Shown here in pieces: positions 48,585 to 63,894 of a DNA stretch of 64,000 nt. A model generated the notes under the pieces. That model saw only the letters and a program-made list of their open reading frames with translations, did no database searches and was not told the origin of the DNA. The DNA lies in the IMG/VR virus record IMGVR_UViG_3300034104_005687, positions 285,370 through 349,369 of that record; one strand, given 5' to 3'. The position numbers and the translations under genes were made by a program. Numbering within the stretch: position 1 is the first letter of the stretch; each line of letters begins with the position of its first letter.

Positions 48585-49276
48585 CTATGTTAGAAACAAC
48601 TTATGAAAGCGGAACATCGTATCGTTCTGCCAGTGAAATCAACTCAGCAATGGGTCGTGTGTATGGACACATGAGTCTTGCTGTACTTGTATCAATGTTT
48701 GTGAGTTACTTTGTGGGCACCAGTCCAGAGTTGCTGGCATTCTTTTTTACAGGCTGGACGAAGTGGATTGTGATCTTTTCACCACTGGTGGCAATTTTTG
48801 GTGTTGCAATGGTACTAGCCAATAACCCAAGTAAAAGTGTAGCACAGTTATGCTTGCATGGCTTTGCGGCCTTGATGGGCTTGAGCTTTGCCACAATCTT
48901 TGCTGTGTTCACCATGGGCAGTATTGTGTCAGCATTCATGGGTGCGGCCATCCTGTTTGGTGTAATGAGTGTATATGGTTACTTTACCAAACAAAGTTTA
49001 GATAGTGTTGGTAAGTTTATGTTTGTGGGACTGATTGCTATCATCATTGCCAGCATTGTGAACATCTTTATTGGATCAACTGTGATGCAGATGGTGATTA
49101 GTGCTTTGGCAATTATTATCTTCCTTGGATTGACTGCTTATGACACACAAAAGATCCGTGAAGAACTCAGCATGGAAACCAGTGACAGCGCAGAAGTCCG
49201 TGGTGCATTGACACTATACATGGACTTCATTAACTTGTTTATTAACCTGTTACAACTGTTTGGTGATAGAAAATAA
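48581..49276 (+). CDS. Bax inhibitor-1/YccA family membrane protein
   Basis: About 7 hydrophobic segments, AYDTQKI, ALTLYMDFINLF. Confidence 0.92.
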   Translation: MTMLETTYESGTSYRSASEINSAMGRVYGHMSLAVLVSMFVSYFVGTSPELLAFFFTGWTKWIVIFSPLVAIFGVAMVLANNPSKSVAQLCLHGFAALMGLSFATIFAVFTMGSIVSAFMGAAILFGVMSVYGYFTKQSLDSVGKFMFVGLIAIIIASIVNIFIGSTVMQMVISALAIIIFLGLTAYDTQKIREELSMETSDSAEVRGALTLYMDFINLFINLLQLFGDRK

Positions 49277-49908
49277 TGAGTTATATTGTAGGATCGTTAC
49301 CGCCTGTCAAATGTTTTGTCAAACGAGAGTTTCTCTATAACTTTGAAAAGGGTCACGGAGAATTAGAACCTGCAATATGGGTCAGTCTCAAAGCCCTACG
49401 TGGACAAGTGTTTCGTATTGAATCATTACTGCCCAACTACGGAGCACTCTACGACAAACTACCTATTCATGCTTATGTGTGGCAAGAAGACTACTCGGGC
49501 AATTTGCCCGTAGATACACTACAGCTTTGGGACTGCATGGGTTATCGCTTTACTATCATTGAAAAAATAGGCCTGCGTAATCTAGGTGTTAAGTTTCTGG
49601 GCAAAGATCGGGAATGGCATCACGGAACCTATTTGTTTACAGTGGATTTTTGTGCTGACGGCATGGATGTAGACACAGGCTTTACTGAGGTCGCGGAAGA
49701 ACACAAATCGTTTAATTTTATTCGACTGGAAAACGGTCAGTTTGCCTGCCAACCCAACAATCGATGCTTGTGGTACGATCAAAGTTTGATTTCTGGCAAT
49801 GTTAAGTTTCCAGATTTCAAAGCCGCACAGACCATATTCACAGTGGATGGCACACGCAAGTGGTCAGCAGGAGATGATTGGTTTTATTCAATTGAGGAAA
49901 GAAAATGA
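49276..49908 (+). CDS. Hypothetical protein
   Basis: Coupled ORF. Confidence 0.75.
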   Translation: MSYIVGSLPPVKCFVKREFLYNFEKGHGELEPAIWVSLKALRGQVFRIESLLPNYGALYDKLPIHAYVWQEDYSGNLPVDTLQLWDCMGYRFTIIEKIGLRNLGVKFLGKDREWHHGTYLFTVDFCADGMDVDTGFTEVAEEHKSFNFIRLENGQFACQPNNRCLWYDQSLISGNVKFPDFKAAQTIFTVDGTRKWSAGDDWFYSIEERK

Positions 49909-50411
49909 GTTTTATTGAAACAGTAAAAGGCGCATTGCCAGACTATGCCAAAGACACCAAGTTGAATCTTGATGCTGTGCTACTGCGTAGTACTTTAGAT
50001 GCAGATGTGGCCCTGGGCTGTGCTGTGGCTGCACTGGCTGCAACTGGCAACGGAAAGGTACTGGCTGTGTTGTTGGCAGATGCTCCTGAGTTTGCCGACA
50101 GTGCAATGACAGCCGCAAGCATTATGGCTCAGAACAATACCTGGTATCCTTACATTGAAATGGCAGAAGATCCTGCATTAAAAGGGTTGCCGGCACAGTT
50201 GCGTATGAACGCTATTGCCAGCCACGGTGGCACAACCAAGGCCAACTTTGAAGCATTCAGTTTGGCAGCCAGCATTGTGGGCAAGTGCCATTTCTGTGTA
50301 AAAGCACACTATGACACCTTGAAGACAGAAGGCTACACAGTGGAACAACTTCGTGACATTGGACGTATTGCCAGTGTTATGAATGCCGTGGCCAAGGTTC
50401 TCAACAGCTGA
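49905..50411 (+). CDS. ahpD: Alkyl hydroperoxide reductase AhpD
   Basis: LPDYAKD.KLNL, CHFCVKAH. Confidence 0.92.
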   Translation: MSFIETVKGALPDYAKDTKLNLDAVLLRSTLDADVALGCAVAALAATGNGKVLAVLLADAPEFADSAMTAASIMAQNNTWYPYIEMAEDPALKGLPAQLRMNAIASHGGTTKANFEAFSLAASIVGKCHFCVKAHYDTLKTEGYTVEQLRDIGRIASVMNAVAKVLNS

Positions 50412-50487
50412 TCAAACAGGTTGACTGCTCTACTCAAAGTCCTGTATAATGTGCATACAGGACTTTTTTACGATGTAAATAAACAAC

Positions 50488-50571
50488 GCGACTGTGGTGG
50501 AATGGTATACACAGCAGACTTAAAATCTGCCGCCTACGGGATTGAGGGTTCAAGTCCCTCCAGTCGTACCA
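50488..50571 (+). tRNA. tRNA-Leu (TAA)
   Basis: Type II cloverleaf, CCA. Confidence 0.9.
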
Positions 50572-50582
50572 ACTTGGTATTC

Positions 50583-51149
50583 ATGATGATTAGTTCAAGC
50601 CCCTCCCGTAATACCTTTCAAAAAGAAAAGTATATCGAACGCTGTAAGGAACAAGGCAAAGTGCCCAACAAAGCATATATCAAAATGTACGAACAACACA
50701 ACATTGATAAGTTAGAACGAGAAGAAAATCCAGAATGGCAAAAGAACAATATGGAGTTTGATCTCCGTAGTACCGATTGGATTCTAGCCAAAGTTCGTGC
50801 GTCCGAAGCCTACGCACAGAATCTTTATGCTGCCATGTGCAACCGCGAATTTCAAAAGAATGAAGTATGGCCCTTGTTGAAAAATCAAACCTGGGGTGCC
50901 AGTTGGCGATATGCCGGCGGCATTATCGCCGACATGCGTGGCGAGGGAGACTACATAGACTGGTACTGTTCGGGCATTCAAGGCGGAGTCTCGGAAGCAG
51001 AACTGGCAGAAATGACTGCAGAGCAGCAGGAACGACACCACTGGTATGAAAAAAACTTTGTACCCGAAGGCGTGGTCACTGACGAGATTCGTGCAGACCT
51101 GTTGAAGTTGGGATGGCTAGTAGTGGATGAAAAACAAGACCTTGCGTAA
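50583..51149 (+). CDS. Hypothetical protein
   Basis: Start placed after tRNA-Leu. Confidence 0.7.
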   Translation: MMISSSPSRNTFQKEKYIERCKEQGKVPNKAYIKMYEQHNIDKLEREENPEWQKNNMEFDLRSTDWILAKVRASEAYAQNLYAAMCNREFQKNEVWPLLKNQTWGASWRYAGGIIADMRGEGDYIDWYCSGIQGGVSEAELAEMTAEQQERHHWYEKNFVPEGVVTDEIRADLLKLGWLVVDEKQDLA

Positions 51150-51242
51150 TTTTACATAAATATTGTTACCATCTGCTCAGATGTGTTATTTTTATTCATC
51201 AGAATAAAATTCATTAACCAAACAAAATTTTCAAGGATATCA

Positions 51243-52151
51243 ATGAAAAAAATTATTTCAGCATTGGCCATTGCTTTGGCATGTTTTTCAGCATCGGCTA
51301 CTCCTACCGCACCGCAAACTGTACAACTAGTTTGGCCTTTTGCTGTTGGGGGTATGGGAGCGATGACCCGAAGTCTTATGGATATTGCCAATCAACAACA
51401 AAGCACATATCAATTTGTGTTTACTCATAAACCAGGTGCCGGCAGCACAGTTGCTGCCAACTATGTGTTGTCTTCAACGTCGTTGACAGTGTTTGCAAAC
51501 TCTGATGGAATGTACACCAGACCACTGATGTACAACGAAAGTCACGATCCGGCTCAATTCCAATTGGTGAGTGCAACGTGCACAAACATTCCATTGGCAA
51601 TCTACAGCCGTCGATACGCATCTGTGGACAACTTAAAAAACAAAGATGTCAGCGTGGGTATTATCCCCGGAACTGCAACTCAATTGTTCACACGCTTGCT
51701 GTCGGCCAACAATCCTGATTTAAAATTCACCGACGTGCCATACAAAGGTATTCCTGAATCAACTGTTGATGTGTTGGGCGGACATGTTGACGCCAATGTT
51801 GCCTTTCTTGGCAAAACAGGCTCTGCGCTGGCTTCAGGAGACGTATCACTTCTTGGTATTTCAGGAACTCGTAGTTTTCCTGGTGCGCCCACTTTTGCAA
51901 GTTTAAAAGTAAAAGGTGTTGAACAATTGACCAATGGTTACTATATCTTTGTTCCACGAACTGTTGATGCAAAAATAGCACAAGACCTCAATAGAATATT
52001 CAACAATGCTGCCAATTCAGATGCTTTCAAAGAAATTTGCACAGGAGAACGCGGGACTGTAGAGTCTGTGACATTTGGACAAACAGAAAAAATGCATCAA
52101 TCCAACATACAGCAATGGACTCGATTCACCCGCGGTATTGCAAAACAGTAA
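51243..52151 (+). CDS. Bug/TctC substrate-binding protein
   Basis: Signal peptide, WPFAVGG, KPGAG, VPYKG..DVLGGHVD. Confidence 0.85.
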   Translation: MKKIISALAIALACFSASATPTAPQTVQLVWPFAVGGMGAMTRSLMDIANQQQSTYQFVFTHKPGAGSTVAANYVLSSTSLTVFANSDGMYTRPLMYNESHDPAQFQLVSATCTNIPLAIYSRRYASVDNLKNKDVSVGIIPGTATQLFTRLLSANNPDLKFTDVPYKGIPESTVDVLGGHVDANVAFLGKTGSALASGDVSLLGISGTRSFPGAPTFASLKVKGVEQLTNGYYIFVPRTVDAKIAQDLNRIFNNAANSDAFKEICTGERGTVESVTFGQTEKMHQSNIQQWTRFTRGIAKQ

Positions 52152-52205
52152 TTTTGGATAGTTACAGAACTCACCAACAAAAGTACATTTTTATGAATTA
52201 TTTGT

Positions 52206-53477
52206 ATGTACCCACCAGCAGATAAAAATCGTTATGGATACTACACTGTTGGTGATTTCAAAACTTACAGCAAACTGGAAGCCATAGAACTCAGCGGAAA
52301 AATCAAACAACCTCTACAATGGAGATTCAACCAGCCCAAATTTGAGCAGTTTGACTGGACGCACGAACCTCCGGGTAGTTTGGAATTTTGGTACAAACAA
52401 CGGGCACAGCAGCTGAGAGAACAATATGATTATATTGTTATATGGTATTCTGGCGGCGCTGACAGTCACAATGTTCTTATGAGTTTTGTGAGAAACAATA
52501 TTTTTGTCGACGAGATTGCACAATACCACAATCTCAACGGTGACAAAGGCAACAAAAATACATATCTCAACGAAGAAGTATTTGCCACCTCCGCTCCTAT
52601 CACTCAGGATCTAATTGCAAACAATCCACTGTATCGTCATACCAAACACAGATTGGTAGATCTGTCAGACATACAAATGAAGATTCTTAAAGAAGACAGC
52701 AACAAATGGGACTATGTTTACAAAGTAGGAACCCATCCAAGCCCCAATGCACTGGCCAGAAGCTATCTTCGAGAAGTTATACCTGATTATGTTTCTTTAA
52801 TTGAACAAGGCAAACGTGTTTGTTTTTTGTTTGGCGCCGAAAAACCACTGGTACAATATCACAACGCTGATTGGTACGTGGCATTTCAGGACATGCTGGA
52901 CAATGCAGTGAGCCCAAGAACACAGATGTTGAATAGAGCATGGGAACATGACGAACTGTTTTACTGGAGCGATACCATGCCTCAATTGGCTGCAAAACAA
53001 GCTCATGTAGTAAAACGTTTTTTAAGTGGGCTCTCCCCAGAATTAGTTGACAATGTGCATGTTTCTTCTTACAATAAGTTATATGACGAATATGGCAGGA
53101 AAAAAGTAAATTCCTGGTGTGCCAATATTGACGTGAGCGGAATCAAATATCAATTGTTGCCCGATGGCCTTCATCGTTTGATCTACCCTGACTGGAATCC
53201 AATGTCTGTTGTTGCCAATAAGCCTCCGAGTACTTTGTATACTCCAAGAGATACCTGGATGTTTAACTCTGCAGCCCCCGATATTGGACAAAAATACTAT
53301 CATCACGGGTTATTGCATTTGCGACAGTTGGTCAAAAAGGCAGCCCCAGAATATTGGTGGGAATTCAAATATGATCCCGAATCAGGCATGCCATATGTTG
53401 GTGGATTAACGGCATGCTACAATAGGTACTGTCTGACGCCGAAATCAGGAATTGCCCAACCCACAACAATCAAATGA
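52206..53477 (+). CDS. PP-loop (adenine nucleotide alpha hydrolase-like) protein
   Basis: YSGGADS. Confidence 0.7.
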   Translation: MYPPADKNRYGYYTVGDFKTYSKLEAIELSGKIKQPLQWRFNQPKFEQFDWTHEPPGSLEFWYKQRAQQLREQYDYIVIWYSGGADSHNVLMSFVRNNIFVDEIAQYHNLNGDKGNKNTYLNEEVFATSAPITQDLIANNPLYRHTKHRLVDLSDIQMKILKEDSNKWDYVYKVGTHPSPNALARSYLREVIPDYVSLIEQGKRVCFLFGAEKPLVQYHNADWYVAFQDMLDNAVSPRTQMLNRAWEHDELFYWSDTMPQLAAKQAHVVKRFLSGLSPELVDNVHVSSYNKLYDEYGRKKVNSWCANIDVSGIKYQLLPDGLHRLIYPDWNPMSVVANKPPSTLYTPRDTWMFNSAAPDIGQKYYHHGLLHLRQLVKKAAPEYWWEFKYDPESGMPYVGGLTACYNRYCLTPKSGIAQPTTIK

Positions 53478-54703
53478 ACCATTACAATACTCAATTTTTT
53501 GATGTAACGCTGGAACAAAATTTCAAGTTAGGATATTATCAAGTTGGCAATCAAATTTATGTCAGCAAAGTCCAAGCCTTGATGGAAGCCACCAAAACCA
53601 ACCAGTTTCCACATTGGAATTTCAACAACGAAGTTTTTTCCAAACAGGCCTGGACTGCGGAGCCTGAAGTCAATATAAGAGAACTGTATAGACTGCGAGC
53701 TCAGCAACTGCGTGACAAGTATGACTACATCAGAATTGAATGCAGCGGCGGCGGAGACAGCACACAGGTAGTCTACAATTTTTTGCTCAACAACATTCAT
53801 GTTGACGAAATTTTGGTTCGATATCCCAAGGCCGGCGAACACAACATCAAAAAAGACCCCTTCAACTTCAGAGTAGAAAATCATCTCAGTGAATATGAAT
53901 ATGCTGCTCGACCACTGTTGAACTGGGTCAAAACAAATTTTCCCAAAGTAAAAATCACTGTCCATGACTACAGTGAAGACATGTTGAACGACACAGACCG
54001 TGACGAATCTTGGGTGTATGCTGCCAAGGACTTTTTGCAACCAGCACACGTGACCAAGTTCACCACATATCATACCATGGATCAACGAACCCTGGTGGAC
54101 CAAGGCAAAAAGATTTGCATATTGTACGGTATTGACAAACCCAAAATTTGCCACAAAGACGGCAAATGGTATTTGTATTTTATAGATTTTCAAGCCAACT
54201 ATGCCAATTCGGATGTTGGAGAATACAACAATATCACCAATGAATATTTTTTCTGGACTCCAGATTTCCCTGAGATACTGTTGAAGCAAGCACACATCAT
54301 TGTGAAATGGTTTAATCAACCAGCCAACCGTCATTTACAGTATCTGGCCAGATGGCCTAATCACAGTAATTTACAACGCACAGCATACGAAGCCTGTGTC
54401 AAACCCCTGATTTATGTAGATTACGATCCTGCCACTTTTCAGGTAGCCAAGCCTATTACTAATTTTTACAGTGAAATGGACCATTGGTTCTATACCAATT
54501 TCAAGGATCACAAACTGTACAGTAGTTGGAAAGCAGGCATTGACTTTGTTGAACGCACCATAGACAACAAATATTTCAACAAAGAATTCGGACGCAATAT
54601 CGGATTTATTGGATTCTTGAGTCCCTTCTACTATATCAGAGACGTAGAGCACGGCCAGGATCAACACATCAAGTTAGCAACAAATAACTTTGACAGATTT
54701 TGA
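53474..54703 (+). CDS. PP-loop protein, paralog of preceding gene
   Basis: RAQQLR..YD, SGGGDS, KQAH shared. Confidence 0.7.
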   Translation: MNHYNTQFFDVTLEQNFKLGYYQVGNQIYVSKVQALMEATKTNQFPHWNFNNEVFSKQAWTAEPEVNIRELYRLRAQQLRDKYDYIRIECSGGGDSTQVVYNFLLNNIHVDEILVRYPKAGEHNIKKDPFNFRVENHLSEYEYAARPLLNWVKTNFPKVKITVHDYSEDMLNDTDRDESWVYAAKDFLQPAHVTKFTTYHTMDQRTLVDQGKKICILYGIDKPKICHKDGKWYLYFIDFQANYANSDVGEYNNITNEYFFWTPDFPEILLKQAHIIVKWFNQPANRHLQYLARWPNHSNLQRTAYEACVKPLIYVDYDPATFQVAKPITNFYSEMDHWFYTNFKDHKLYSSWKAGIDFVERTIDNKYFNKEFGRNIGFIGFLSPFYYIRDVEHGQDQHIKLATNNFDRF

Positions 54704-54889
54704 CTCACTAAGTACAAAGCAACGCCGCACTGCCGACGTCGGACAACATATTGACGCTTGAGGTACAAAAACCTCTTTACTGCTGTGATACATGCAGAAC
54801 GCCAATTCCCGTAAGTAGAAAATCTACCAGCCAAACATCATTGACAAATTCACACAGAATTTGTATAATTTTACATTGGAGAAACAAAC

Positions 54890-55798
54890 ATGAAAAAACT
54901 TTTAACTGCTGTGGTTCTGTCCATGGCCGCACTGAGTGCAAATGCCAAAGAAACCATTCAAATCATCTATGGGTTTGGAGCCGGTGACAACAGCACCAAC
55001 TATGCTCGCAACATGGCCGCAGAAGCCAACAAAATTCAAAACAAATACAATTTTGTGTTTGACGTCAAGTCCGGCGGCGGACAAGTCGTGGCCTTTAACT
55101 ATGTGAAAAATACGTCAGGTGCAATTTTTATGACATCGGGTGCATATTGGCTGCGACCCAATTTCTATCCCACAGCAAGTTATGATGTCAACGAATTTCG
55201 CACCATCATGACACAATGCAGTGTGCCGTTTGCTGTGGCATCCAAGAAGCATGCCAACTGGGCCAGTGTGCCCAAAAATCAGCCAATTACCATTGCCACC
55301 TCGGGGCTGGGAGTGGTCAGTCATTTGACAGCATTGCAAATTCAAAAGATATATCCCAACTCCACTATTGTGCCATACAAGAGCACTTCCGAAGCATTGG
55401 TTGCCACAATGTCAGGACAAGTTGATCTTGTAGTGGGTTTTGTAGGCGACATCGAAAAATACACACAAGAAGGATTTGCTGGAAAACTAACTACCTTGGG
55501 CACCACCGGTCCCAAGTTTGTGGGCAACTATCCTAACTTGACCAGTCAGGGATTCCCTGCACCGCTGGCCAAGATGAATACTCCCTACAACTTGATGGTG
55601 CCACGATCTTTTCCTGAAGACAAAGCCAAAGAAATTCGTGAAATCTTGTTGTCGGTGGAAAACAAAAAATCAGTACGTGATGCATATGCACTGGACCATT
55701 GCCAGCCTTTCCAAGTACCTGCAAAGGATCTTGGCACCTGGTGGAACGAGCAAAATCAATACTGGTCTGGTTTGACTGTTGGCGTCAAGATTGATTAA
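54890..55798 (+). CDS. Bug/TctC substrate-binding protein
   Basis: Signal peptide, VPYKS..SGQVD. Confidence 0.8.
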   Translation: MKKLLTAVVLSMAALSANAKETIQIIYGFGAGDNSTNYARNMAAEANKIQNKYNFVFDVKSGGGQVVAFNYVKNTSGAIFMTSGAYWLRPNFYPTASYDVNEFRTIMTQCSVPFAVASKKHANWASVPKNQPITIATSGLGVVSHLTALQIQKIYPNSTIVPYKSTSEALVATMSGQVDLVVGFVGDIEKYTQEGFAGKLTTLGTTGPKFVGNYPNLTSQGFPAPLAKMNTPYNLMVPRSFPEDKAKEIREILLSVENKKSVRDAYALDHCQPFQVPAKDLGTWWNEQNQYWSGLTVGVKID

Positions 55799-55808
55799 AT
55801 AAAAGTTA

Positions 55809-56176
55809 TTGCTGTATGAAGCAAAGAGAAAAGTGTCTTGGACGGGGGTGCGAATCCCCCCAGGTCCACCAATAAGGATGATTATGAACGTTACACAAAC
55901 ATTAAAAGTTACAGGCTATCTAGTAGGTGCATACATTGCTTACAAGTTAGGTCTTGAAGTGTGGTGTGTTGTTTATGGACTGCTTTATTGATGGGCCTGA
56001 CCTAGATTCGACAGGGCAACAAGTAAATTAGTGGACAGCTCGGCAATGTGAAAGCCGTTAGGGTTGGGAGAACTCGGCCGTAGAAGCAAAAAAAGTAACC
56101 GCAAACGACTCACAGTTCGCATTGGCAGCTTGAACAAGGCTACCTAGGGTAAGACATACCTCGTAACAGAAACTCC
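55809..56176 (+). ncRNA. ssrA: Circularly permuted two-piece tmRNA, tag ANDSQFALAA; outer ends approximate
   Basis: T-arm + CAGGTCCACCA (ends 55871) precedes GGGCCTGA..GATTCGAC (55993); G3-U70 pair; tag 56101-56133. Confidence 0.9.
55884..55991 (+). CDS. 35-aa hydrophobic ORF inside the tmRNA intervening segment
   Basis: AAGGA RBS; fills the spacer almost exactly. Confidence 0.45.
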   Translation: MNVTQTLKVTGYLVGAYIAYKLGLEVWCVVYGLLY

Positions 56177-56203
56177 AAAAAGGCGTCAAAATACGCCTTT
56201 TTT
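56177..56203 (+). terminator. Intrinsic terminator
   Basis: AAAAGGCGT..ACGCCTTTTTT. Confidence 0.8.
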
Positions 56204-56278
56204 GTTGACTTAGTTAGTAAAACCACTATATACTTGTCTATGGTCGACTTTGATCATACTTTCTAAAGGAAAAATCTA

Positions 56279-57160
56279 ATGAAGAAAATTTTAGTTACAG
56301 CCGCTTTGTTGGCTACTTGTGCTCTGGCTTCTGCACAAACTACTGTGTACGGTCGGATGAACGCCACAGTTGACAACACCAAAACAGGTGCCAGCACTGT
56401 CAACAGCATCGCCAACGATATCAGCCACATTGGCTTTCGTGTACAAGAAAATATCGGCAAGGGCTTGACAGCTCGTGCTGTGATCGAAACTGGCATTAAC
56501 AGCCAAGATCCCACCGGTGGTACAGACACACAGCTGGGCAATCGCCACAGCACTGTGGGTCTTGTTGCCAAAGCAGGTAGCCTGGACCTAGGACGTAGAA
56601 CTCACGGCATCTTTACCACTGCTGCCGACAATGATTCTTTTGGCGCACTGTACGGCAGTATTGCTGGTGATGTACACAATCTACGTGGCAATCGACTCAG
56701 CAACGGCGTGTTTGCTCGTGTTACTGCTTTTCCCGGTGTAGCATTGGGTGCTGACCGTACTCATACTGCTGCCGGTCAAGAAGTCACTGTATACAGTGCC
56801 GGCGCCAAGTTTGGCATTGTCAACACCAGTGTTGCTCAATTTGATCAAGGTGCCGAAAAGAGCACAATGCTTGGCGCCAATGCCAAGTTTGGTGCAACCA
56901 CTGTGTTTTACAGCCACAGTGACAATCAAGGCGTTGTTGCCAACAAAGGCAACTTGGTTGGCGCTGCTCAAAAAGTAGGTGCTTACACCCTCAAGGCCAG
57001 CTATGGCAAGACCAACGCCGATGTTGAAGCCTACAATGTTGGTGCTGAGTATGCACTCAGCAAACGTACTGATCTCTTGGTCAGCTATCGCAACGTTGAC
57101 AAAACAGGTTCTGTCAACGACGTCAAACAGGTTGGCGTAGGCGTTACACATCGCTTCTGA
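56279..57160 (+). CDS. Gram-negative general porin
   Basis: Signal peptide, TVYG, GAEYALSKRT, terminal HRF. Confidence 0.9.
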   Translation: MKKILVTAALLATCALASAQTTVYGRMNATVDNTKTGASTVNSIANDISHIGFRVQENIGKGLTARAVIETGINSQDPTGGTDTQLGNRHSTVGLVAKAGSLDLGRRTHGIFTTAADNDSFGALYGSIAGDVHNLRGNRLSNGVFARVTAFPGVALGADRTHTAAGQEVTVYSAGAKFGIVNTSVAQFDQGAEKSTMLGANAKFGATTVFYSHSDNQGVVANKGNLVGAAQKVGAYTLKASYGKTNADVEAYNVGAEYALSKRTDLLVSYRNVDKTGSVNDVKQVGVGVTHRF

Positions 57161-57178
57161 TTTCAGTAGTGTACTAAC

Positions 57179-57206
57179 AAAACCCGCCGAGGCGGGTTTT
57201 CTTTTT
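57179..57206 (+). terminator. Intrinsic terminator
   Basis: AAAACCCGCC-GA-GGCGGGTTTT. Confidence 0.85.
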
Positions 57207-57222
57207 GATTAAATTGTCGGGT

Positions 57223-57240
57223 CTGTAACAAAATTGTAAC
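57223..57240 (+). promoter_or_regulatory. Pho box
   Basis: CTGTAAC-AAAA-TTGTAAC, 11-bp period. Confidence 0.7.
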
Positions 57241-57261
57241 AGTCTTCGTCTTAAATAATAG

Positions 57262-58143
57262 ATGAAGACATATCGCTCAATCTTTGTCAGTGATGTCCAT
57301 CTTGGAACCAAAGATTGTCAAGCCGATCGTCTCAATAACTTTCTCAAACACAACACCTGTGACACACTGTATCTAGTAGGCGATATTATCGATGCCTGGA
57401 AGATACAACAAAACAAATGGCGCTGGAAACAAAGCCATACCAACGTGGTACGCAGAGTACTGGGTCATGCCAAGCGCGGAACCCGTGTAGTATTCATAGC
57501 AGGCAATCACGATGAATTCCTTAGGCCCATGATACCTTATGGTTTCAGTTTTGGTTTAATAGAAATACACAATCAAACGGAACACATAGGCGCAGATGGT
57601 AAGCACTACTTAGTTGTTCACGGTGACTTGTTTGACGGCATCACCCGCCTAGCACCATGGATAGCATTCTTAGGAGATAAAGCATATGATGTTGTTCTTG
57701 CACTCAACAATAAATTTAATTGGATTCGTCGTCGCATGGGTTTTGGGTACTTTAGCCTTAGCCGGTATCTTAAGTACAAAGTTAAAAAAGCAGTAGACTT
57801 TGTGTTCAAGTTTGAAGAGAATTTAGCCAACTACTGCAAAAAGCGTGGCTTTGATGGAGTCATCTGCGGACACATACATCACGCAGAAATAAAAGAAATC
57901 AACGGTGTCGCATACATGAATGATGGCGACTGGGTTGAATCGTGTACAGCACTTGTAGAACATCACGATGGCCGTTGGGAAATCGTAACTTGGACCAAGG
58001 AGAGCGACCATGTGGATACTGATAATACTGGCAGTGCATCTAAACAATCCAAAAGACATTCCAGGACGGGTAATGATAGAATTTCCTACCCTCCAGGACT
58101 GCGAGCGAGCTCGGTCAACAATGACCAGTTGGCTAAAATTTGA
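57262..58143 (+). CDS. plcP: PlcP-like metallophosphoesterase (LpxH-related phospholipase C)
   Basis: SDVHLG, LVGDIID, GNHD, HGD, GHIH, NDGDWVES; Pho box and downstream GT. Confidence 0.7.
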   Translation: MKTYRSIFVSDVHLGTKDCQADRLNNFLKHNTCDTLYLVGDIIDAWKIQQNKWRWKQSHTNVVRRVLGHAKRGTRVVFIAGNHDEFLRPMIPYGFSFGLIEIHNQTEHIGADGKHYLVVHGDLFDGITRLAPWIAFLGDKAYDVVLALNNKFNWIRRRMGFGYFSLSRYLKYKVKKAVDFVFKFEENLANYCKKRGFDGVICGHIHHAEIKEINGVAYMNDGDWVESCTALVEHHDGRWEIVTWTKESDHVDTDNTGSASKQSKRHSRTGNDRISYPPGLRASSVNNDQLAKI

Positions 58144-58183
58144 TAACTTCAAGGTGGTAGCAGAATGCAAGAAACAACTCTAA
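58010..58183 (+). CDS. 57-aa ORF overlapping the plcP tail
   Basis: AAGGAG RBS; MWILIILAVH... Confidence 0.5.
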   Translation: MWILIILAVHLNNPKDIPGRVMIEFPTLQDCERARSTMTSWLKFDNFKVVAECKKQL

Positions 58184-58884
58184 GCGACACAATTACCATA
58201 GTGGTACCCTGTAAGAATGAGGAGAACTATATTGCACATTTATTAATGCACCTACGCCAGCAGTCAATAGGTCGTACTAGAATTATCATTGCCGACTGTT
58301 CAACAGACCGCACTCGAGAAGTTATAGAAATAATGAAAGGTGAATTGAATGTTGAAATCATTGAGGGCGGGCCTGTTTCTACTGCCAAGAACCGTGGAGC
58401 ACAACTGGTCACCACTCCCTACATCTTGTTCGTTGACGCTGATGTACGTTTCTTCAAAGACACAGTCATCCGTGATGCTGTTGACCTAATAGAGTCTAAA
58501 AACCTAGATCTTATCGGCCTGAATATCAAATGCTATGACAAGGACCTACGAGCAAAGATTGGATTCACTGCATTTAATTTAATCAATCATGCATTAAAAT
58601 ACTTTTCGCCATTTGCTGTAGGAGCGTTCATGCTGACCCGCAGAGATCGTTTTGAAGAGTATGGCGGCTTTCCTGAACAATTTTCCACCAGCGAAGACTT
58701 CTTCTTGTCAAGAAAGTACAATCCTCGAAAGTTCAAAATTGTAAAACATTACTTTGGACAGGATAGTCGTAGATTTAAGAAGATGGGTTATTTTGGGATG
58801 GGCAAATACCTAATAAAGAACTTTGTTAATCGCAACAACCAGGCATATTGGAACCGTTTGGACGGATCCAAATACTGGTCATAA
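58165..58884 (+). CDS. GT2 glycosyltransferase
   Basis: VVPCKNE, STDRT, FVDAD, GGF..SED. Confidence 0.88.
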   Translation: MQETTLSDTITIVVPCKNEENYIAHLLMHLRQQSIGRTRIIIADCSTDRTREVIEIMKGELNVEIIEGGPVSTAKNRGAQLVTTPYILFVDADVRFFKDTVIRDAVDLIESKNLDLIGLNIKCYDKDLRAKIGFTAFNLINHALKYFSPFAVGAFMLTRRDRFEEYGGFPEQFSTSEDFFLSRKYNPRKFKIVKHYFGQDSRRFKKMGYFGMGKYLIKNFVNRNNQAYWNRLDGSKYWS

Positions 58885-58904
58885 TTTTGTAACAAAATTG
58901 TAAT
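58876..58904 (+). promoter_or_regulatory. Pho box with three half-sites
   Basis: TGGTCAT/TTGTAAC/TTGTAAT at 58876, 58887, 58898. Confidence 0.75.
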
Positions 58905-58946
58905 ATTATTCTACTTAAATAATTTTGTCACAACAAGGAGAACCCA

Positions 58947-59951
58947 GTGAACAAACTACTAGCAATTTTATTAGCCGCAGTAACGGTGTCAGCACAAGCT
59001 GCAGACATCACAGGCGCAGGCGCCACTTTCCCGTTCCCAATCTATGCCAAGTGGGCTGAAGCCTACAAGAAAGAAACAGGCATTGGGCTCAACTATCAAT
59101 CAATTGGATCATCGGGCGGCATTAGACAAATCAATTCCAGGACTGTGACGTTTGGCGCAACAGACGCACCTGTTAAGGGCGAAGATCTTGACAAGAATGG
59201 TCAAGTGCAGTTTCCGGCCATCATTGGTGGTACTGTGCCTATTGTTAACTTAGATGGTTTCAAGCCAGGCGAACTACGCATCACAGGACCTGTTATGGCT
59301 GAAGTGTTCATGGGCAACATCTCTAAATGGAATGACCCTAAACTAACAGCATTGAATCCAGGTAAGAATTTACCTAACGAACCAATCACAGTGGTTCACC
59401 GCGCTGATGGTTCAGGCACAACATTCAACTGGACTGACTATCTAAGCACAGTCAGCAAAGAGTTCAATGATAAAGTAGGAAAAGGTGCCGCAGTTAAATG
59501 GCCGGCTGCCACTTCAATTGGTGGCAAAGGCAATGAAGGTGTTGCTGCCAACGTCAACAGAGTTAAGGGCAGTATTGGTTATGTAGAGTATGCTTATGTT
59601 AAGAAAAACAACATGACGTTCCTACAACTACAAAACAAGTCAGGAAAGTATGTTAGCCCAGATGACTTAACATTTGCCGCAGCCGCAGATGGCGCCGATT
59701 GGTTCTCAGTACCTGGCATGGGATTAAGCATTGTTGATCAACGTAATCCTAATGCTTGGCCAGTGAGTTCAGCCAGTTTCATCATCATGTACAAGACTCC
59801 TGCTAACAAAGCCAATAGCGATGAAGTGTTAAAGTTCTTTGACTGGGCATTCAAGAACGGCAAGAAAGATGCTGTAGATTTAGACTACGTGCCATTGCCT
59901 GATGCTCTAACAAAGCAGATCCGTGAACGTGTTTGGACTCAGATCAAGTAA
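58947..59951 (+). CDS. pstS: Phosphate ABC transporter substrate-binding protein
   Basis: GAGATFP, YQSIGS, RADGSGTT, GYVEY. Confidence 0.97.
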   Translation: MNKLLAILLAAVTVSAQAADITGAGATFPFPIYAKWAEAYKKETGIGLNYQSIGSSGGIRQINSRTVTFGATDAPVKGEDLDKNGQVQFPAIIGGTVPIVNLDGFKPGELRITGPVMAEVFMGNISKWNDPKLTALNPGKNLPNEPITVVHRADGSGTTFNWTDYLSTVSKEFNDKVGKGAAVKWPAATSIGGKGNEGVAANVNRVKGSIGYVEYAYVKKNNMTFLQLQNKSGKYVSPDDLTFAAAADGADWFSVPGMGLSIVDQRNPNAWPVSSASFIIMYKTPANKANSDEVLKFFDWAFKNGKKDAVDLDYVPLPDALTKQIRERVWTQIK

Positions 59952-59997
59952 ATCGACCACAACGATAGAGTGGCGCTGGAACTCGTAACCAGCATGC

Positions 59998-60023
59998 AAA
60001 AAGGCTACTTTGATAGCCTTTTT
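59998..60023 (+). terminator. Intrinsic terminator
   Basis: AAAAAGGCTA..TAGCCTTTTT. Confidence 0.8.
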
Positions 60024-60025
60024 CT

Positions 60026-60207
60026 TTGACTTTTTTGTTGCAGGCATATATAATGCACTATGATGACAGCAATCGCATTCACCGTGAAAAACATACCGGC
60101 CATTTGTGAGCAGGCCTATGAGCATGATTACCCGCGAGGTCTTTGTCGTTGTAGTTAACAAAAGTACTACATTCTGCAAAGACCCGCACACTAGGCGGGT
60201 TTTTTTA
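60026..60207 (+). promoter_or_regulatory. Attenuator-like unit 1: promoter, 32-aa leader ORF (60060-60158), antiterminator, terminator
   Basis: TTGACT-17-TATAAT; 60138-60146 pairs with 60176-60184, overlapping terminator 60181-60207. Confidence 0.6.
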
Positions 60208-60311
60208 TGGCGGTAGACACAATATTCACAATTTGCTACAATAGAAACAAGTTAGGAAATACAGCAAAGTTTGCAAAGACCCTACAAATTGAAGGGCTTT
60301 TGCAAAACAAG

Positions 60312-60393
60312 TTGACCAGTAAAACACAAGATGTTATACTAGAGACTAGTTAGGAAATAGTAGATCGAGACTGTTTTCAAAGTTCGTTAAAAA
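60312..60393 (+). promoter_or_regulatory. Sigma70 promoter and boxA-like element for tRNA array
   Basis: TTGACC-17-TATACT; GTTCGTTAAAAA at 60382. Confidence 0.55.
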
Positions 60394-60429
60394 ATTCAAG
60401 TTTGTATAGTGTACTCGGGCTTGCTCGGG

Positions 60430-60696
60430 CACTATATGTAAACACATTAAGGTTACCTACACTGTTAGGGGTGAACGAAAAGGCGTTGAAGAAGTACTTC
60501 GGTACACGGCCTTGATACCCATGAAGCAGGAAGCCCGAAATAGATACCTGAGCCTATACCAAAGGCAACGAGCGGTTGAAATAGGGAACAACTTCTGGGA
60601 ATGCGACAGGCTAAACAGTAGGCTGTAATGAGAAAAAATGTAAACTAACAGGTGGTGCTGAGTTTATATCCTCCCTTAATGTTTTTTCATATAGTG
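60430..60696 (+). ncRNA. Stem-closed putative small RNA
   Basis: CACTATATG.AAACACATTAAGG pairs with CCTTAATGTTTTTTCATATAGTG. Confidence 0.5.
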
Positions 60697-60704
60697 ATTT
60701 TTTT

Positions 60705-60780
60705 GGTCTTAAAGTGTTCATGGACGCACGATGGCTTGTCACGCCATAAGAGTGGGGATCGTTACCCCCTAAGACCGCCA
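60705..60780 (+). tRNA. tRNA-Asp (GTC)
   Basis: Cloverleaf, atypical T loop, CCA. Confidence 0.82.
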
Positions 60781-60859
60781 AGTTTTGAGAGCCACATCGC
60801 CCTGATACTTCCCTCGGTAACGAGGCACTAGGTCTTGCAACCGTGGCTCTCCTCTTTTT

Positions 60860-60934
60860 GCTGGGTTCGTCTATCGGTTAGGACACAAGCCTTTCACGTT
60901 TGTAAGACGGGTTCGATTCCCGTACCCAGTACCA
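60860..60934 (+). tRNA. tRNA-Glu (TTC)
   Basis: Cloverleaf, CCA. Confidence 0.9.
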
Positions 60935-60938
60935 TTTT

Positions 60939-61024
60939 GGAGATGTAGGAAAATTGGTAACCCCAGTGGACTGTAAATCCGCCGCCTTACGGCACTACTG
61001 GTTCGACTCCAGTCGTCTCCACCA
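60939..61024 (+). tRNA. tRNA-Tyr (GTA)
   Basis: Type II cloverleaf, CCA. Confidence 0.9.
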
Positions 61025-61231
61025 ATGAACGTTCCGGGTGTCTCCGGATAGTGTGACCCACACGATGAGAAGTTGAGTGACATCAACGGGTGGTAGTCTT
61101 TGAACCCAAAGGCCGCTGGCAATGCGAGAACGGTCCCTGTCGGGAAGCGGGTGGAAGGTACGTGTGATGGGTACGATAGCGTCGTATCTTGATGTACTAC
61201 AATTACCGCCGGGGGATGCAGAGCATTTTTG

Positions 61232-61389
61232 TTTTTATAGTCAAGCATCGATACAGGTATCGTGACAGGACGCTGTCACTATTCGGGCCTAACTGTGCGA
61301 GGAACAGGTCCTGACATAACTGCTATTCGCTTGTCAGTGTTAGCTACATTGTTGACAAATCGGCATCTCTCGGTGCTTGACTATAAAAA
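61232..61389 (+). ncRNA. Stem-closed putative small RNA
   Basis: 20-bp closing stem 61232-61251 / 61370-61389. Confidence 0.5.
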
Positions 61390-61392
61390 TAT

Positions 61393-61470
61393 GTAGGGGT
61401 GGCAGAGTGGTCAAATGCAACGGATTGCAAATCCGTAAAGCCGTGAGTTCAAATCTCACTCCCTACTCCA
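61393..61470 (+). tRNA. tRNA-Cys (GCA)
   Basis: Cloverleaf, U73, CCA. Confidence 0.88.
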
Positions 61471-61557
61471 TTGATAAACACATTCACAGATCCGCCCTGT
61501 TACCTAGGGAGTCAGCGAGTAACCGCTTATGGACTGTTCAAGAGTGTGTTTTTCAAT

Positions 61558-61649
61558 GGGAGTGAGACTTGGTAGTCAGAGAGGTCTTATATACCTTTTA
61601 GCGCCAGATTAGCGTTCTTGAGAGAGTTCGATCCTCTCCACTCCTACCA
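61558..61649 (+). tRNA. Atypical tRNA with TAT anticodon and long variable arm
   Basis: GGGAGTG/CACTCCT acceptor, GAGGT-CTTATAT-ACCTT, T arm, CCA. Confidence 0.65.
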
Positions 61650-61659
61650 TAAATAATGG

Positions 61660-61735
61660 CGCAGTGTGTTAGAAGCGGTATCTGGCAAGGCTCATAACCT
61701 TGAGGTCGGGGGTTCGATTCCCTCCACTGCAACCA
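61660..61735 (+). tRNA. tRNA-fMet-like (CAT)
   Basis: C1xA72 mismatch, CCA. Confidence 0.82.
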
Positions 61736-61793
61736 ATTTGAGTCGTGTGATATAAATATCACACAAGAGCTTCTTGAGGTCAACCTCAAGAAG

Positions 61794-62004
61794 TAAATAA
61801 AGTACAATAGGACTTATGATGCAAACAATCATTCATTCACAGTTAAAATCCGCAATGTGCCCCCAGACACTGGTCTGGTCACGCGGCTTTACATCTGCGA
61901 ATAGTATTCCAGGGTCACCTGGGTCCTTTGAAGGCGAGAAGATTCTAAAAGTCTAACTCGCACAAATTCAAAAGGACCCCGGGACTAAAAACCCCGGGGT
62001 TTTT
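61794..62004 (+). promoter_or_regulatory. Attenuator-like unit 2: 46-aa leader ORF (61816-61956), antiterminator, terminator
   Basis: 61921-61932 pairs with 61967-61979, overlapping terminator 61976-62004. Confidence 0.6.
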
Positions 62005-62186
62005 CTTTTAGTGCAACGGCAACGCGAGCCGGCAACACTCTAAACTGCAAATGGGCGGCCTGTAGGATGGAGCACTTCTTCTAGTGTGAAAAATTACAGC
62101 GTATTAAAGCATTCTTTAAGAACAGGCAGCCTAAGTATTTTAGAGTGCTTTAATACACACATTCCTAAGAGTGTGTTTGAAAATTT

Positions 62187-62261
62187 GGGCTGATAGTGAT
62201 AATGGGAGCACAGTGGCTTTGCAAGCCTCGGGTCGGGGTTCGATCCCCCGTCGGTCCACCA
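62187..62261 (+). tRNA. tRNA-Ala (TGC)
   Basis: G3-U70, CCA. Confidence 0.9.
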
Positions 62262-62266
62262 AATAG

Positions 62267-62340
62267 GTATCCATAGTGTAATGGCAGCATCGCGGTCTCC
62301 AAAACCGTCAGTCTAGGTTCGAGTCCTAGTGGGTACGCCA
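62267..62340 (+). tRNA. tRNA-Trp (CCA)
   Basis: Cloverleaf, CCA. Confidence 0.9.
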
Positions 62341-62348
62341 AGTTTTGT

Positions 62349-62422
62349 TCGGGTATAGTGTAATGGTAACACCACAGACTTTGACTCTGTTATTCTAGGT
62401 TCGAGCCCTAGTACCCGTGCCA
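62349..62422 (+). tRNA. tRNA-Gln (TTG)
   Basis: Cloverleaf, CCA. Confidence 0.9.
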
Positions 62423-62430
62423 GTTTCGTT

Positions 62431-62504
62431 GCTCGGTTAGTTAAATGGTATAACGGACGCTTGATAAGCGTTTATTACAAGTTCAATTCTTGTACTGAGC
62501 ACCA
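62431..62504 (+). tRNA. tRNA-Ile (GAT)
   Basis: Cloverleaf, CCA. Confidence 0.9.
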
Positions 62505-62549
62505 ATTTTTGTAGGCGGTCACAGAGCCGTCTATAAGTAAAAAGTTCAT

Positions 62550-62639
62550 GGTGCGGTCCTATAATGGTATTAGAGCGGATTGCTAATCCGTCGCTCGGTG
62601 AAAGCCGGGTTCTGAGTTCGAGTCTCAGTCGCACCGCCA
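62550..62639 (+). tRNA. tRNA-Ser (GCT)
   Basis: Type II cloverleaf, CCA. Confidence 0.9.
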
Positions 62640-62645
62640 GAATAT

Positions 62646-62721
62646 TCCCCAGTAGCACAGCGGTAGTTGCACTTGACTGTTAATCAAGGTGTCCGTGGTT
62701 CGATCCCACGCTGGGGAGCCA
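62646..62721 (+). tRNA. tRNA-Asn (GTT)
   Basis: Cloverleaf, CCA. Confidence 0.9.
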
Positions 62722-62726
62722 AGTTT

Positions 62727-62800
62727 GCCCTATTAGTATAATGGTATTACACCTGTTTTGTAATCAGGTTACGGCAGTTCGATTCTGTCATGGGGCACCA
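62727..62800 (+). tRNA. tRNA-Thr (TGT)
   Basis: Cloverleaf, CCA. Confidence 0.9.
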
Positions 62801-62807
62801 AAACAAC

Positions 62808-62881
62808 GCGGGATTAGTTTAATGGTCAAACGAAACCTTGCCAAGGTTTAGTCAGGAGTTCGATTCTCCTATCCCGCTCCA
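62808..62881 (+). tRNA. tRNA-Gly (GCC)
   Basis: Cloverleaf, CCA. Confidence 0.9.
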
Positions 62882-62885
62882 TCTT

Positions 62886-62959
62886 GCTCCTATAGTATAA
62901 TGGTAATACACGCCCTTGGTAAGGGCGAGCCGCAAGTTCAATTCTCGCTAGGAGCACCA
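62886..62959 (+). tRNA. tRNA-Thr (GGT)
   Basis: Cloverleaf, CCA. Confidence 0.88.
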
Positions 62960-63014
62960 TTTACAAGTCTACACTCTCCCTTGACGAGCTAGGTCCCTGG
63001 ACTTTTGTTTCACT

Positions 63015-63092
63015 GCGTCTCTAGTTCAACTGGATAGAACACCGGCCTACGAAGCCGTGAGGTTGGGGATTCGAATTCCTCGGGACGCACCA
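63015..63092 (+). tRNA. tRNA-Arg (ACG)
   Basis: Cloverleaf, CCA. Confidence 0.85.
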
Positions 63093-63100
63093 AACAGCAG

Positions 63101-63129
63101 TTGACAACATTCTGTGATTGTTGTATAAT
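63101..63129 (+). promoter_or_regulatory. Consensus sigma70 promoter inside tRNA array
   Basis: TTGACA-17-TATAAT. Confidence 0.85.
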
Positions 63130-63239
63130 AATATTTTTGACACAAAGAGGTAATGACATGAAACGAGGTAAACTCTAGTGTCATCCTAGACCCCGTATGG
63201 TCCTGGATGGCACGATAAAGACAATTCTTTACGATCCAT

Positions 63240-63314
63240 CCCTTCGAGATGTTATGGTAGCATAGCGGACTCTTAATCCGACAAGCGTCAGTTCGACTCT
63301 GACCGGAGGGACCA
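63240..63314 (+). tRNA. tRNA-Lys (CTT)
   Basis: Cloverleaf with A8, CCA. Confidence 0.8.
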
Positions 63315-63317
63315 TAT

Positions 63318-63392
63318 GGGGGTATAACTTAACGGCTAAAGTAGTAGGCTTTTAACCTATTAATCAGAGTTCGATTCTCTGTGCCCCTACCA
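63318..63392 (+). tRNA. tRNA-Lys (TTT)
   Basis: Cloverleaf, CCA. Confidence 0.9.
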
Positions 63393-63474
63393 TATAAAAA
63401 CACATTACAAGCGGTATCGCTTTTCGGCAAAGCCCGTGCCAAAGTAGTCAGTCTAGGATAGTGTGTTTCTATAT

Positions 63475-63549: not shown

Positions 63550-63559
63550 AAATATTTTG

Positions 63560-63634: not shown

Positions 63635-63635
63635 A

Positions 63636-63710: not shown

Positions 63711-63711
63711 G

Positions 63712-63882: not shown

Positions 63883-63894
63883 CAAGTATTTATT

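Follow-up and report, generated by a model that had tools for sequence, protein, structure and literature searches.

The DNA analysed here, referred to as the window, is the final 64 kb of a 349,369-bp virus genome in IMG/VR, which is 97% complete as estimated by CheckV. The tmRNA locus described below belongs to an uncultured lake-water jumbo phage and not to a bacterium. A total of 24 tRNA genes were found in the window by ARAGORN, and the tmRNA gene, which is the only one in the phage genome, is flanked by genes for a TctC-family binding protein, a Gram-negative porin and a metallophosphoesterase. No match to SmpB (PF01668) was found anywhere in the 349-kb genome and the SmpB partner of this tmRNA is presumably supplied by the host, the absence being one of the partner and having no bearing on the membership of the RNA in its family. 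The DNA of the locus is present in 20 lake-water metagenomes, and no RNA run was found to contain it. Among cultured phages, the peptide described below gave no match by tblastn, and the sole match to the locus by blastn was the acceptor piece of Xanthomonas phages X1 and BUDD, where the intervening segment (IVS, or spacer) is 125 nt long and has no ORF.

A single permuted tmRNA was called in the window by ARAGORN (55779-56224, tag ANDSQFALAA). The Rfam model RF04321 (tmRNA_permuted) is covered in full by a match at 55810-56133 with 112 bits against a cut-off of 47, and RF01850 (beta_tmRNA) is passed marginally, with 91.6 bits against a cut-off of 84, over 55759-56203 including its lineage-specific 5' and 3' parts. 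Both of the permuted models require an insertion of about 100 nt at the IVS, which amounts to 103 nt in the RF01850 alignment. The coordinates of all the features are collected in Table 1. The mature 5' G of the coding piece is at 55993, and in the acceptor stem the strand GGGCCUG pairs with CAGGUCC (55861-55867), which is followed by ACCA, with G3 placed opposite U. The G3-U70 alanine identity pair, the discriminator A and the CCA are all present. The gene is an intact circularly permuted (two-piece) tmRNA gene and, by analogy with known two-piece tmRNAs, the IVS would be missing from its mature RNA. The T-loop UGCGAAU was considered as a mark of a phage-specific tmRNA lineage and was rejected, the same T-arm pattern being found in 89 of 120 sampled loci, which are standard tmRNAs of many bacterial phyla.

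Table 1. Positions of the features annotated at the tmRNA locus, numbered from the first letter of the window.
Feature	Position	Strand	Description
Promoter-like site	55772-55800	+	-35 TTGACT (55772-55777), 17-nt spacer, -10 TTAAAT (55795-55800); function inferred
Acceptor piece	55810-55871	+	5' leader helix strand, T-arm (loop UGCGAAU), 3' acceptor strand, ACCA end; RF04321 match starts at 55810
3' tRNA-like domain	55833-55871	+	ARAGORN domain map; CCA at 55869-55871
IVS (spacer), 121 nt	55872-55992	+	Between the 3' and 5' tRNA domains of ARAGORN
IVS closing helix, 5' strand AUAAGG	55872-55877	+	Overlaps the Shine-Dalgarno; pairs with 55983-55988 (MFE: spacer positions 1-6 with 112-117)
Shine-Dalgarno-like AAGGA	55874-55878	+	5 nt before ATG at 55884
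35-codon ORF and TGA	55884-55991	+	TGA at 55989-55991; single T at 55992 before the mature 5' G at 55993
IVS closing helix, 3' strand CUUUAU	55983-55988	+	MFE fold; last two sense codons (Leu-Tyr) of the ORF
Conserved UGAU	55989-55992	+	UGA is the stop of the ORF; inferred RNase P site after 55992
Coding piece	55993-56176	+	Acceptor strand GGGCCUG (55993-55999), tRNA-like 5' domain to 56019, then pseudoknot and mRNA-like part; ARAGORN, Rfam
Tag frame	56101-56133	+	GCA resume codon, ANDSQFALAA (ALAA-type end), UGA; ARAGORN
Terminator-like hairpin	56177-56204	+	Stem GGCGU / ACGCC flanked by runs of A and U; the terminal hairpin of RF01850 aligns here

The upstream TctC-like gene ends inside the putative -10, so that its stop codon overlaps the promoter-like site; this site ends 9 nt before the conserved TGCTG at the start of the tmRNA gene. 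At three related loci with unrelated upstream DNA (L095, L101 and L023), TTGAC[AT]-17-T[AT]TAAT was observed at the same distance from TGCTG, and these are better matches than that of the window. The 5' promoter part of the RF01850 model is also aligned at this site. A consensus scanner did not call a promoter at the window tmRNA, as the second base of the -10 is not A, and a simple terminator scanner made no call at the downstream hairpin. Because the gene has a promoter-like site and a terminator-like hairpin of its own, one primary transcript would hold the acceptor piece, the IVS and the coding piece, and the ORF in the spacer is inferred to lie inside an apparently single tmRNA transcription unit.

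The ATG of this ORF is at spacer position 13, with the 5-nt spacing to the Shine-Dalgarno that is typical of its family. Initiation at a further in-frame ATG (55878) would yield a product of 37 aa, although this codon overlaps the Shine-Dalgarno; the second methionine, from which the 35-aa product starts, is kept in homologues as M-x-M. A 60-aa frame starting with TTG (55809-55991) was rejected, as it is the same ORF read back through the tRNA-like domain and the homologues start at M-x-M. In shuffled versions of the spacer, 15% were found to hold an ORF of this length (P 0.15), and the ORF taken alone is within chance. The first-pass annotation, made from the sequence alone, had described a CCA-ending piece upstream of the 5' acceptor strand and tag ANDSQFALAA, and a 121-nt spacer holding AAGGA and a 35-aa hydrophobic ORF that ends 1 nt before the mature 5' end. 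The former claim held to the base in ARAGORN, Rfam and the sequence, the latter features were all found in place, and the two programs that had been proposed as a check both call a permuted tmRNA. Its bacterial framing, which named alphaproteobacteria and some beta- and cyanobacteria, is corrected for the host, a jumbo phage.

The evidence that takes the window ORF beyond chance comes from its relatives. A phmmer search with the 37-aa translation against 1.84 billion representatives returned proteins of 34-49 aa with 57-76% identity (E 1e-10 to 5e-4), and a profile search led by a 49-aa member of the family gave at least 49 clusters of proteins of 33-66 aa. Eight columns (Y, K, L, E, W, C, Y and G) are invariant in an alignment of 45 family sequences, where they form the core YK..LE.WC..YG in the C-terminal half, and all eight are present in the window protein. 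In the phage's own genome the profile matches with an E of 2.7e-22, the spacer copy being the only one in 349 kb. Between the window and P0002, changes were found at 10.5 of 25.8 synonymous sites and 11.5 of 85.2 non-synonymous sites (w 0.25, Fisher p 0.01), and between the window and P0003 at 18.1 of 24.8 and 19.9 of 86.2 sites respectively (w 0.10, Fisher p 2e-5). The dN/dS of the peptide family ranges from 0.10 to 0.28 with synonymous sites near saturation; in more distant pairs these sites are saturated, with a pN of 0.23-0.33. The closest relative residing in an IVS (L161) differs by only 3 nt, and selection within the slot was measured mainly against P0002. The window ORF is a genuine small protein-coding gene that is conserved and under purifying selection, whereas its translation is inferred.

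The window peptide is hydrophobic and rich in aromatic residues, with a best 17-aa Kyte-Doolittle mean of 1.46 where the cut-off used was 1.8, and its conserved K and E fall inside the hydrophobic stretch. AlphaFold, run with a small alignment, returned one continuous helix with a pLDDT of 78. Neither Pfam nor PHROG gave a match for the peptide, S23p being also not matched, and the ESM Atlas offered no named look-alike. We infer that the peptide is most likely a membrane-associated single helix; its hydrophobicity is moderate, the term membrane protein is not secure and the biochemical role is unknown. The first-pass annotation had proposed that the spacer may double as an mRNA for a small membrane protein, to be checked by dN/dS and to be refuted should the ORF be neither conserved nor translated. 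The substitution counts against P0002 and P0003 show purifying selection, so that the part concerning conservation came out as conserved; conservation supports the gene, and translation and membrane location remain inferred only.

The homologues of this peptide were observed in several positions relative to tmRNA genes. Members of the YK..LE.WC..YG family lie inside the IVS in the window, in L161 and in a group of four loci (L344-347) that carry P0002. The tmRNA of this group is a clearly different permuted one, with T-loop UUCGAAU, acceptor GGGCCAG and tag ANAANDEVYALAA, and its layout is the same as that of the window, in which CCA is followed by 6 nt, then by ATG and the rest of the ORF up to TAT TGA T, and then by GGG. 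Two further proteins inside the IVS (P0011 and P0019) are over-extended gene calls that begin with the translated T-arm. Family homologues are also found directly upstream of the tmRNA gene at L348, L148 (7 nt) and L055/L090 (3 nt), at 0.2-1 kb upstream of it at five loci, and with no tmRNA within the fetched flanks at ten loci where they are free-standing. As homologues exist as free-standing genes, the peptide is a gene and not a structural by-product of the spacer. Two other cargo families likewise occur both in the spacer and just upstream of a tmRNA. As side observations, a NUMOD3 gene abuts the tmRNA at one of the loci with a distant upstream homologue (L386), and a tRNA was found 14 nt upstream of the tmRNA at two other loci.

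The content of the spacer appears to change readily. Close tmRNA relatives of the window, with 89-93% identity in the mature parts, have unrelated spacer content, and in lake metagenomes many contigs share the mature pieces and then diverge right after CCA into other cargo ORFs, which indicates that cargo turnover is fast relative to the RNA. At L348 the tmRNA 5' leader is present as 38-nt direct repeats on either side of an ArsC gene, which shows that partial duplications occur at the tmRNA locus. It is possible, although this is speculation, that an upstream gene enters the spacer when the acceptor piece is duplicated upstream of the adjacent gene and a deletion follows.

The architecture of the spacer was analysed in two sets of viral tmRNAs, one collected with a pattern for the T-arm and 3' acceptor strand that is blind to the Shine-Dalgarno (at least 120 viral contigs, nearly all of them permuted tmRNAs by ARAGORN) and the other with a pattern requiring AAGGA after CCA (at least 119 further contigs). 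The contigs are up to 364 kb long and their spacers range from a few nt to 531 nt; as metagenome viral contigs are perhaps partly redundant, our counts are of distinct spacers and not of independent phages. The first 11 positions of the spacer are paired with positions -5 to -15 (i with -(i+4)) in 82-99% of the 135 distinct viral spacers compared, and the columns of this closing helix show several pair types each, indicating covariation, while slid registers pair far less. The last four bases of the spacer are T, G, A and T in 132, 123, 127 and 113 of the 135 respectively, and this UGAU is kept also in ORF-less spacers of 28-90 nt. The UGAU faces ACCA with three Watson-Crick pairs and one C-A mismatch, so that the acceptor stem and the helix of the spacer are continuous in the precursor as a single long helix. 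Since UGAU is general in the family, ORF-less spacers included, the stop placed 1 nt before the mature 5' end, which had been read as a feature of the window ORF, is a structural motif reused by ORFs and not special to this one. The stability of the window spacer fold is ordinary (z = -1.3). In its MFE fold the Shine-Dalgarno is inside the helix and the AUG is paired, and it is possible that this arrangement blocks translation and does not time it.

ORFs were found to be a general property of the longer spacers. An ORF was counted here when its ATG or GTG start fell within the first 30 nt and at least 75% of the spacer was covered by it. By this definition, the scan blind to the Shine-Dalgarno found ORFs in 17 of the 27 distinct spacers that are 90 nt or longer, whereas 1000 shuffled controls gave 1.5 on average and never more than 6, and the antisense strand gave none; only two of the 37 spacers of 45-89 nt have one, and most spacers overall have none. 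A Shine-Dalgarno-like motif in the first 9 nt tracks the presence of an ORF (15/17 versus 2/47, Fisher p 1e-10), with ORF-less spacers starting with AAGCA or AAGTA and ORF-bearing ones with TAAGGA or AAAGGA. Of 62 distinct ORF-bearing spacers, 48 have their start codon at position 12 or 13, and the ORF commonly ends at the conserved UGA of UGAU or within a dozen nt of it; the window ORF fits this rule of Shine-Dalgarno, start and stop exactly.

The products of these spacer ORFs are 23-151 aa long, and a membrane-like hydrophobic stretch was found in 18 of the 30 products of 45 aa or less. Among the larger products, Pfam or PHROG matches identified a GNAT acetyltransferase, a CxxCxxCC metal-binding protein and, in L068, an HNH homing endonuclease. 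Selection was assessed in ten cargo families that have two or more diverged members. Most of the pairwise dN/dS values are between 0.06 and 0.35, examples being 0.06 for the 86-aa CxxCxxCC protein (dS saturated), about 0.1 for a 36-aa, 0.15 for a 101-aa and 0.14-0.2 for a 122-aa family. Values of about 0.7 were seen in a few pairs that differ by very few substitutions, and in one family the sole pair has a dN/dS above 1, which rests on a single synonymous change. The spacer cargo thus consists of protein-coding genes under purifying selection, and ORF-bearing IVSs are general in a large family of aquatic phage tmRNAs, with dozens of unrelated cargo families.

Our main reading is that the window holds an intact two-piece tmRNA gene whose IVS is occupied by a genuine small protein gene. 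We consider this likely, with a probability of roughly 0.72, translation, co-transcription, the processing sites and the membrane location being inferred. The IVS of this tmRNA family is a hairpin extending the acceptor helix, with a loop that carries an ORF in a large subset, where the 5' strand of the closing helix doubles as the Shine-Dalgarno (TAAGGA) with the start codon 5 nt later. In the mechanism that we infer, ribosomes would load on this Shine-Dalgarno during transcription, before the 3' strand of the closing helix exists, and the closing helix and acceptor stem would form after termination at UGA. RNase P would then cut after U 55992 and 3' processing would expose the CCA, leaving the two tmRNA pieces base-paired, so that the IVS would act both as a processing spacer and as a short mRNA. 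An earlier cut by RNase P would still leave a message that ends with UGAU, a four-base stop signal.

Two of the rival explanations deny either the gene or the RNA, and both are very unlikely. If the ORF were due to chance, the spacer would be a discarded processing hairpin and the frame an accident of U-rich sequence bounded by UGAU. In support of this, the length is reached by a notable share of shuffles (15%), the UGAU and the AAG start are kept also in ORF-less spacers, U-rich sequence yields hydrophobic codons by composition, and the spacer of phages X1 and BUDD has no ORF at a similar length of 125 nt. It is, however, contradicted by conservation, as at least 49 homologous small proteins share eight invariant residues, synonymous changes greatly outnumber non-synonymous ones, and free-standing homologues exist with no tmRNA nearby. 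The tmRNA could alternatively be a relic, that is, a decaying pseudogene split by an inserted real gene and without any dual use. The lack of SmpB in the phage, the G in the T-loop at a position that is usually U55 and the RF01850 score barely above its cut-off would agree with this. Against it, more than 200 viral contigs have both pieces conserved, with co-varying acceptor strands (GGGCCUG, GGGGGUG, GGGGAUG and others) and intact ALAA-type tags, the RF04321 score is far above its cut-off (112 bits against 47), G-containing T-loops are common in standard bacterial tmRNAs, and SmpB can be derived from the host.

The other two rivals accept a real ORF and dispute its relation to the tmRNA, and each appears unlikely to us. 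The gene might be expressed independently, through read-through from the TctC-like gene or from an internal start, with the IVS of the tmRNA precursor being merely degraded. The upstream gene ends inside the putative -10 with no terminator found by the scanner between the two, and long multi-gene transcripts are likely at this locus, given that relatives have the family ORF upstream of the tmRNA or a tRNA adjoining it. However, with the acceptor piece lying 12 nt before the ORF and the RNase P site 1 nt after it, any transcript of the ORF must include both and hence is a tmRNA precursor by construction; the gap of 2 nt between the CCA and the Shine-Dalgarno leaves no room for a separate promoter, and a promoter at a conserved distance precedes the tmRNA gene. 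The ORF might instead resemble a leader peptide, where translation opens the closing helix and controls tmRNA maturation while the peptide itself is irrelevant. This is favoured by the placement of the Shine-Dalgarno in the 5' strand and of the last codons and stop at the 3' strand next to the RNase P site, by the fact that a terminating ribosome would cover the acceptor stem, and by cargo that is extremely diverse with a fixed start position. It is opposed by the purifying selection on the amino-acid sequence in many cargo families, by cargo that includes enzymes with Pfam domains, by the presence of the same proteins away from any tmRNA, and by the ORF-less state of most spacers, which implies that the tmRNA matures without an ORF.

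The reading of a tmRNA gene with a protein gene in its IVS can be taken further. The IVS might be a dedicated and exchangeable expression slot, with a cassette of Shine-Dalgarno and start built into the closing helix, where translation would be co-transcriptional and self-limiting, being shut off by helix formation and RNase P, and the dose of the cargo would be coupled to tmRNA synthesis. Cargo would move back and forth between this slot and the site immediately before the tmRNA gene, as three families apparently did. We offer this bolder version tentatively and regard it as less likely than not.

Two-piece tmRNAs have been treated as pure RNA genes with a waste spacer, and the phage spacer encodes a conserved protein. 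For annotation, this means that RNA finders mask the spacer and that gene callers miss the ORFs or extend them through the tRNA-like domain, as happened with P0011 and P0019. For biology, the inferred transcript would be a natural bacterial mRNA punctuated by tRNA-type processing sites, on which translation and stable-RNA maturation may compete for one helix. For phage evolution, the spacer is a hot spot for the turnover of small genes and homing endonucleases.

It is established that permuted tmRNAs exist and arose by tandem duplication (PMC3978253), and two-piece tmRNAs are known from Alphaproteobacteria, a betaproteobacterial lineage and cyanobacteria (Keiler 2000; Sharkady and Williams 2004, cited in PMC3978253, PMC11915505). 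According to work on Caulobacter that PMC3978253 cites, processing of the precursor removes the IVS and yields two RNAs that remain base-paired. The window gene shares with the bacterial two-piece tmRNAs the order of an acceptor piece with CCA, an IVS and a tagged coding piece, the G3-U pair and the ALAA-type tag, and differs from them in being phage-encoded and in having an IVS that is 121 nt long and protein-coding. In 146 alphaproteobacterial genomes the full-model tmRNA span was mostly 185-260 nt, compared to 324 in the window, and the ARAGORN domain map of the twelve longest showed IVSs of 27-133 nt with no ORF led by a Shine-Dalgarno. This bacterial control is alphaproteobacterial only and includes one unpublished genome (G042), on which no claim depends. 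The 2025 paper on the tmRNA database noted only a tRNA gene or a repeat inside IVSs and no ORFs.

Among the closest known systems are the phage-encoded two-piece tmRNAs, which are known to be frequent in aquatic phages. In the study of Melnitz and pelagimyophages (PMC9004378), 53 of 133 unique phage tmRNAs were permuted and 50 of those were aquatic. These resemble the window in having a permuted ssrA, large myophage-like genomes, adjoining tRNA genes and no phage SmpB. They differ in that a glutamine riboswitch in the 3' domain was described and a coding IVS was not mentioned, whereas the IVS of the window family serves as a gene slot in which the positions of Shine-Dalgarno and start are fixed. 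No description of coding tmRNA spacers was found in the literature searched, and absence there is no proof; as far as that literature shows, this is the first protein gene slot found in a tmRNA permutation spacer.

Protein genes nested in or between stable-RNA genes have several precedents, of which the nearest to the coding tmRNA spacer are the homing endonuclease genes of tmRNA group I introns and the ORFs within the IVSs of 23S rRNA. Phage T4 has small ORFs or homing endonucleases between its tRNA genes. Homing endonuclease genes carried by group I introns in the T-loop of tmRNA are likewise protein genes nested in stable-RNA genes, whereas the phage spacer ORF has no ribozyme or splicing and sits in the permutation spacer. 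The IVS of 23S rRNA that carries an ORF (S23p; Coxiella, Leptospira and others; PMC4990558) is alike in that a helix-closed spacer excised from a stable-RNA precursor holds an ORF and the mature RNA is in pieces. It is unlike the tmRNA spacer in its processing, which is by RNase III there while RNase P and 3' trimming are inferred for the tmRNA, and in its content, as a single ORF family of doubtful translation (PMC4990558) is found in the 23S rRNA spacer and dozens of cargo families under purifying selection are found in the tmRNA IVS.

Three unrelated small-protein families were found at two positions: some phages carry them within the tmRNA spacer, whereas in other phages they lie 0-18 nt upstream of the tmRNA gene. 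Their occurrence in both places suggests that genes move between the spacer and the upstream position. The proteins encoded in the spacer also include a 152-aa HNH homing endonuclease (phrog_655, E 2.6e-15), which fills the 531-nt tmRNA spacer of one related locus, and at a second locus a NUMOD3-type gene lies between an ORF of the window family (YK..LE.WC..YG) and another permuted tmRNA. The spacer proteins of six further loci (L137, L141, L166, L176, L075 and L147; 101-151 aa) are unrelated to each other apart from a common N-terminus, MRI[NK]E[IL]..TES, and this sharing hints at a common 5' cassette or a recombination point. At the locus L348, 38-nt direct repeats of the 5' leader of the tmRNA gene flank an ArsC-family gene, and the window-family ORF extends right up to the first repeat.

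The tmRNA of the window is surrounded on both sides by host-like envelope genes within the phage genome, and the gene order TctC-tmRNA-porin was found again on related contigs. ARAGORN called 24 tRNA genes in the window, most of them in a single array at 60.7-64 kb; one additional tRNA was called by Rfam and missed by ARAGORN, and a 92-nt tRNA-Ile(tat) was called by ARAGORN alone. At two related loci (L042 and L115), a tRNA 3' end consisting of T-arm, acceptor and CCA lies 14 nt upstream of the start of the tmRNA gene, and therefore the tmRNA is a member of a tRNA array in some phages and is probably co-transcribed with it.

In four lake metagenomes, many contigs were recruited by the mature tmRNA pieces (summed depth up to ~900) and few by the spacer, and the population variants cluster near the end of the tag. 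The T-loop of the window tmRNA reads UGCGAAU, with G at the position of U55, which is near-universal in tRNAs. This variant was ruled out as a phage-specific trait because it is widespread in standard bacterial tmRNAs.

Positions of the features described in the text
Feature	Locus	Position
ArsC-family gene with flanking repeats	L348	1096-1606
HNH endonuclease	L068	2271-2726 (-)
NUMOD3-type gene	L386	2909-3514 (-)
Copies upstream of own tmRNA genes	L148, L092, L189, L048, L126, L055/L090	
Spacer copies used for comparison	window, L024, L052 and others	
tmRNA neighbours: TctC-family periplasmic binding protein; porin (Porin_4, E 6e-29); metallophosphoesterase	window	54890-58143
ARAGORN tRNA genes	window	47572-63968
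tRNA (Rfam)	window	63560-63631
tRNA-Ile(tat)	window	61558-61649
T-loop	window	55846-55852
Population variants (lake metagenome contigs)	window	55837-55838; 56130-56142
Permuted tmRNA, phage X1	L360	1478-1928
Permuted tmRNA, phage BUDD	L361	1477-1928

Among cultured phages, the 200-kb Xanthomonas phages X1 and BUDD each carry an unannotated permuted tmRNA with the tag VAANDADYSVARYA; in BUDD, a CDS annotated as 'hypothetical protein' runs across it. The spacer of these tmRNAs is 125 nt long and contains no ORF, and it has the same design as in the tmRNA family of the window, namely a closing helix with UGAU just before the mature 5' end.
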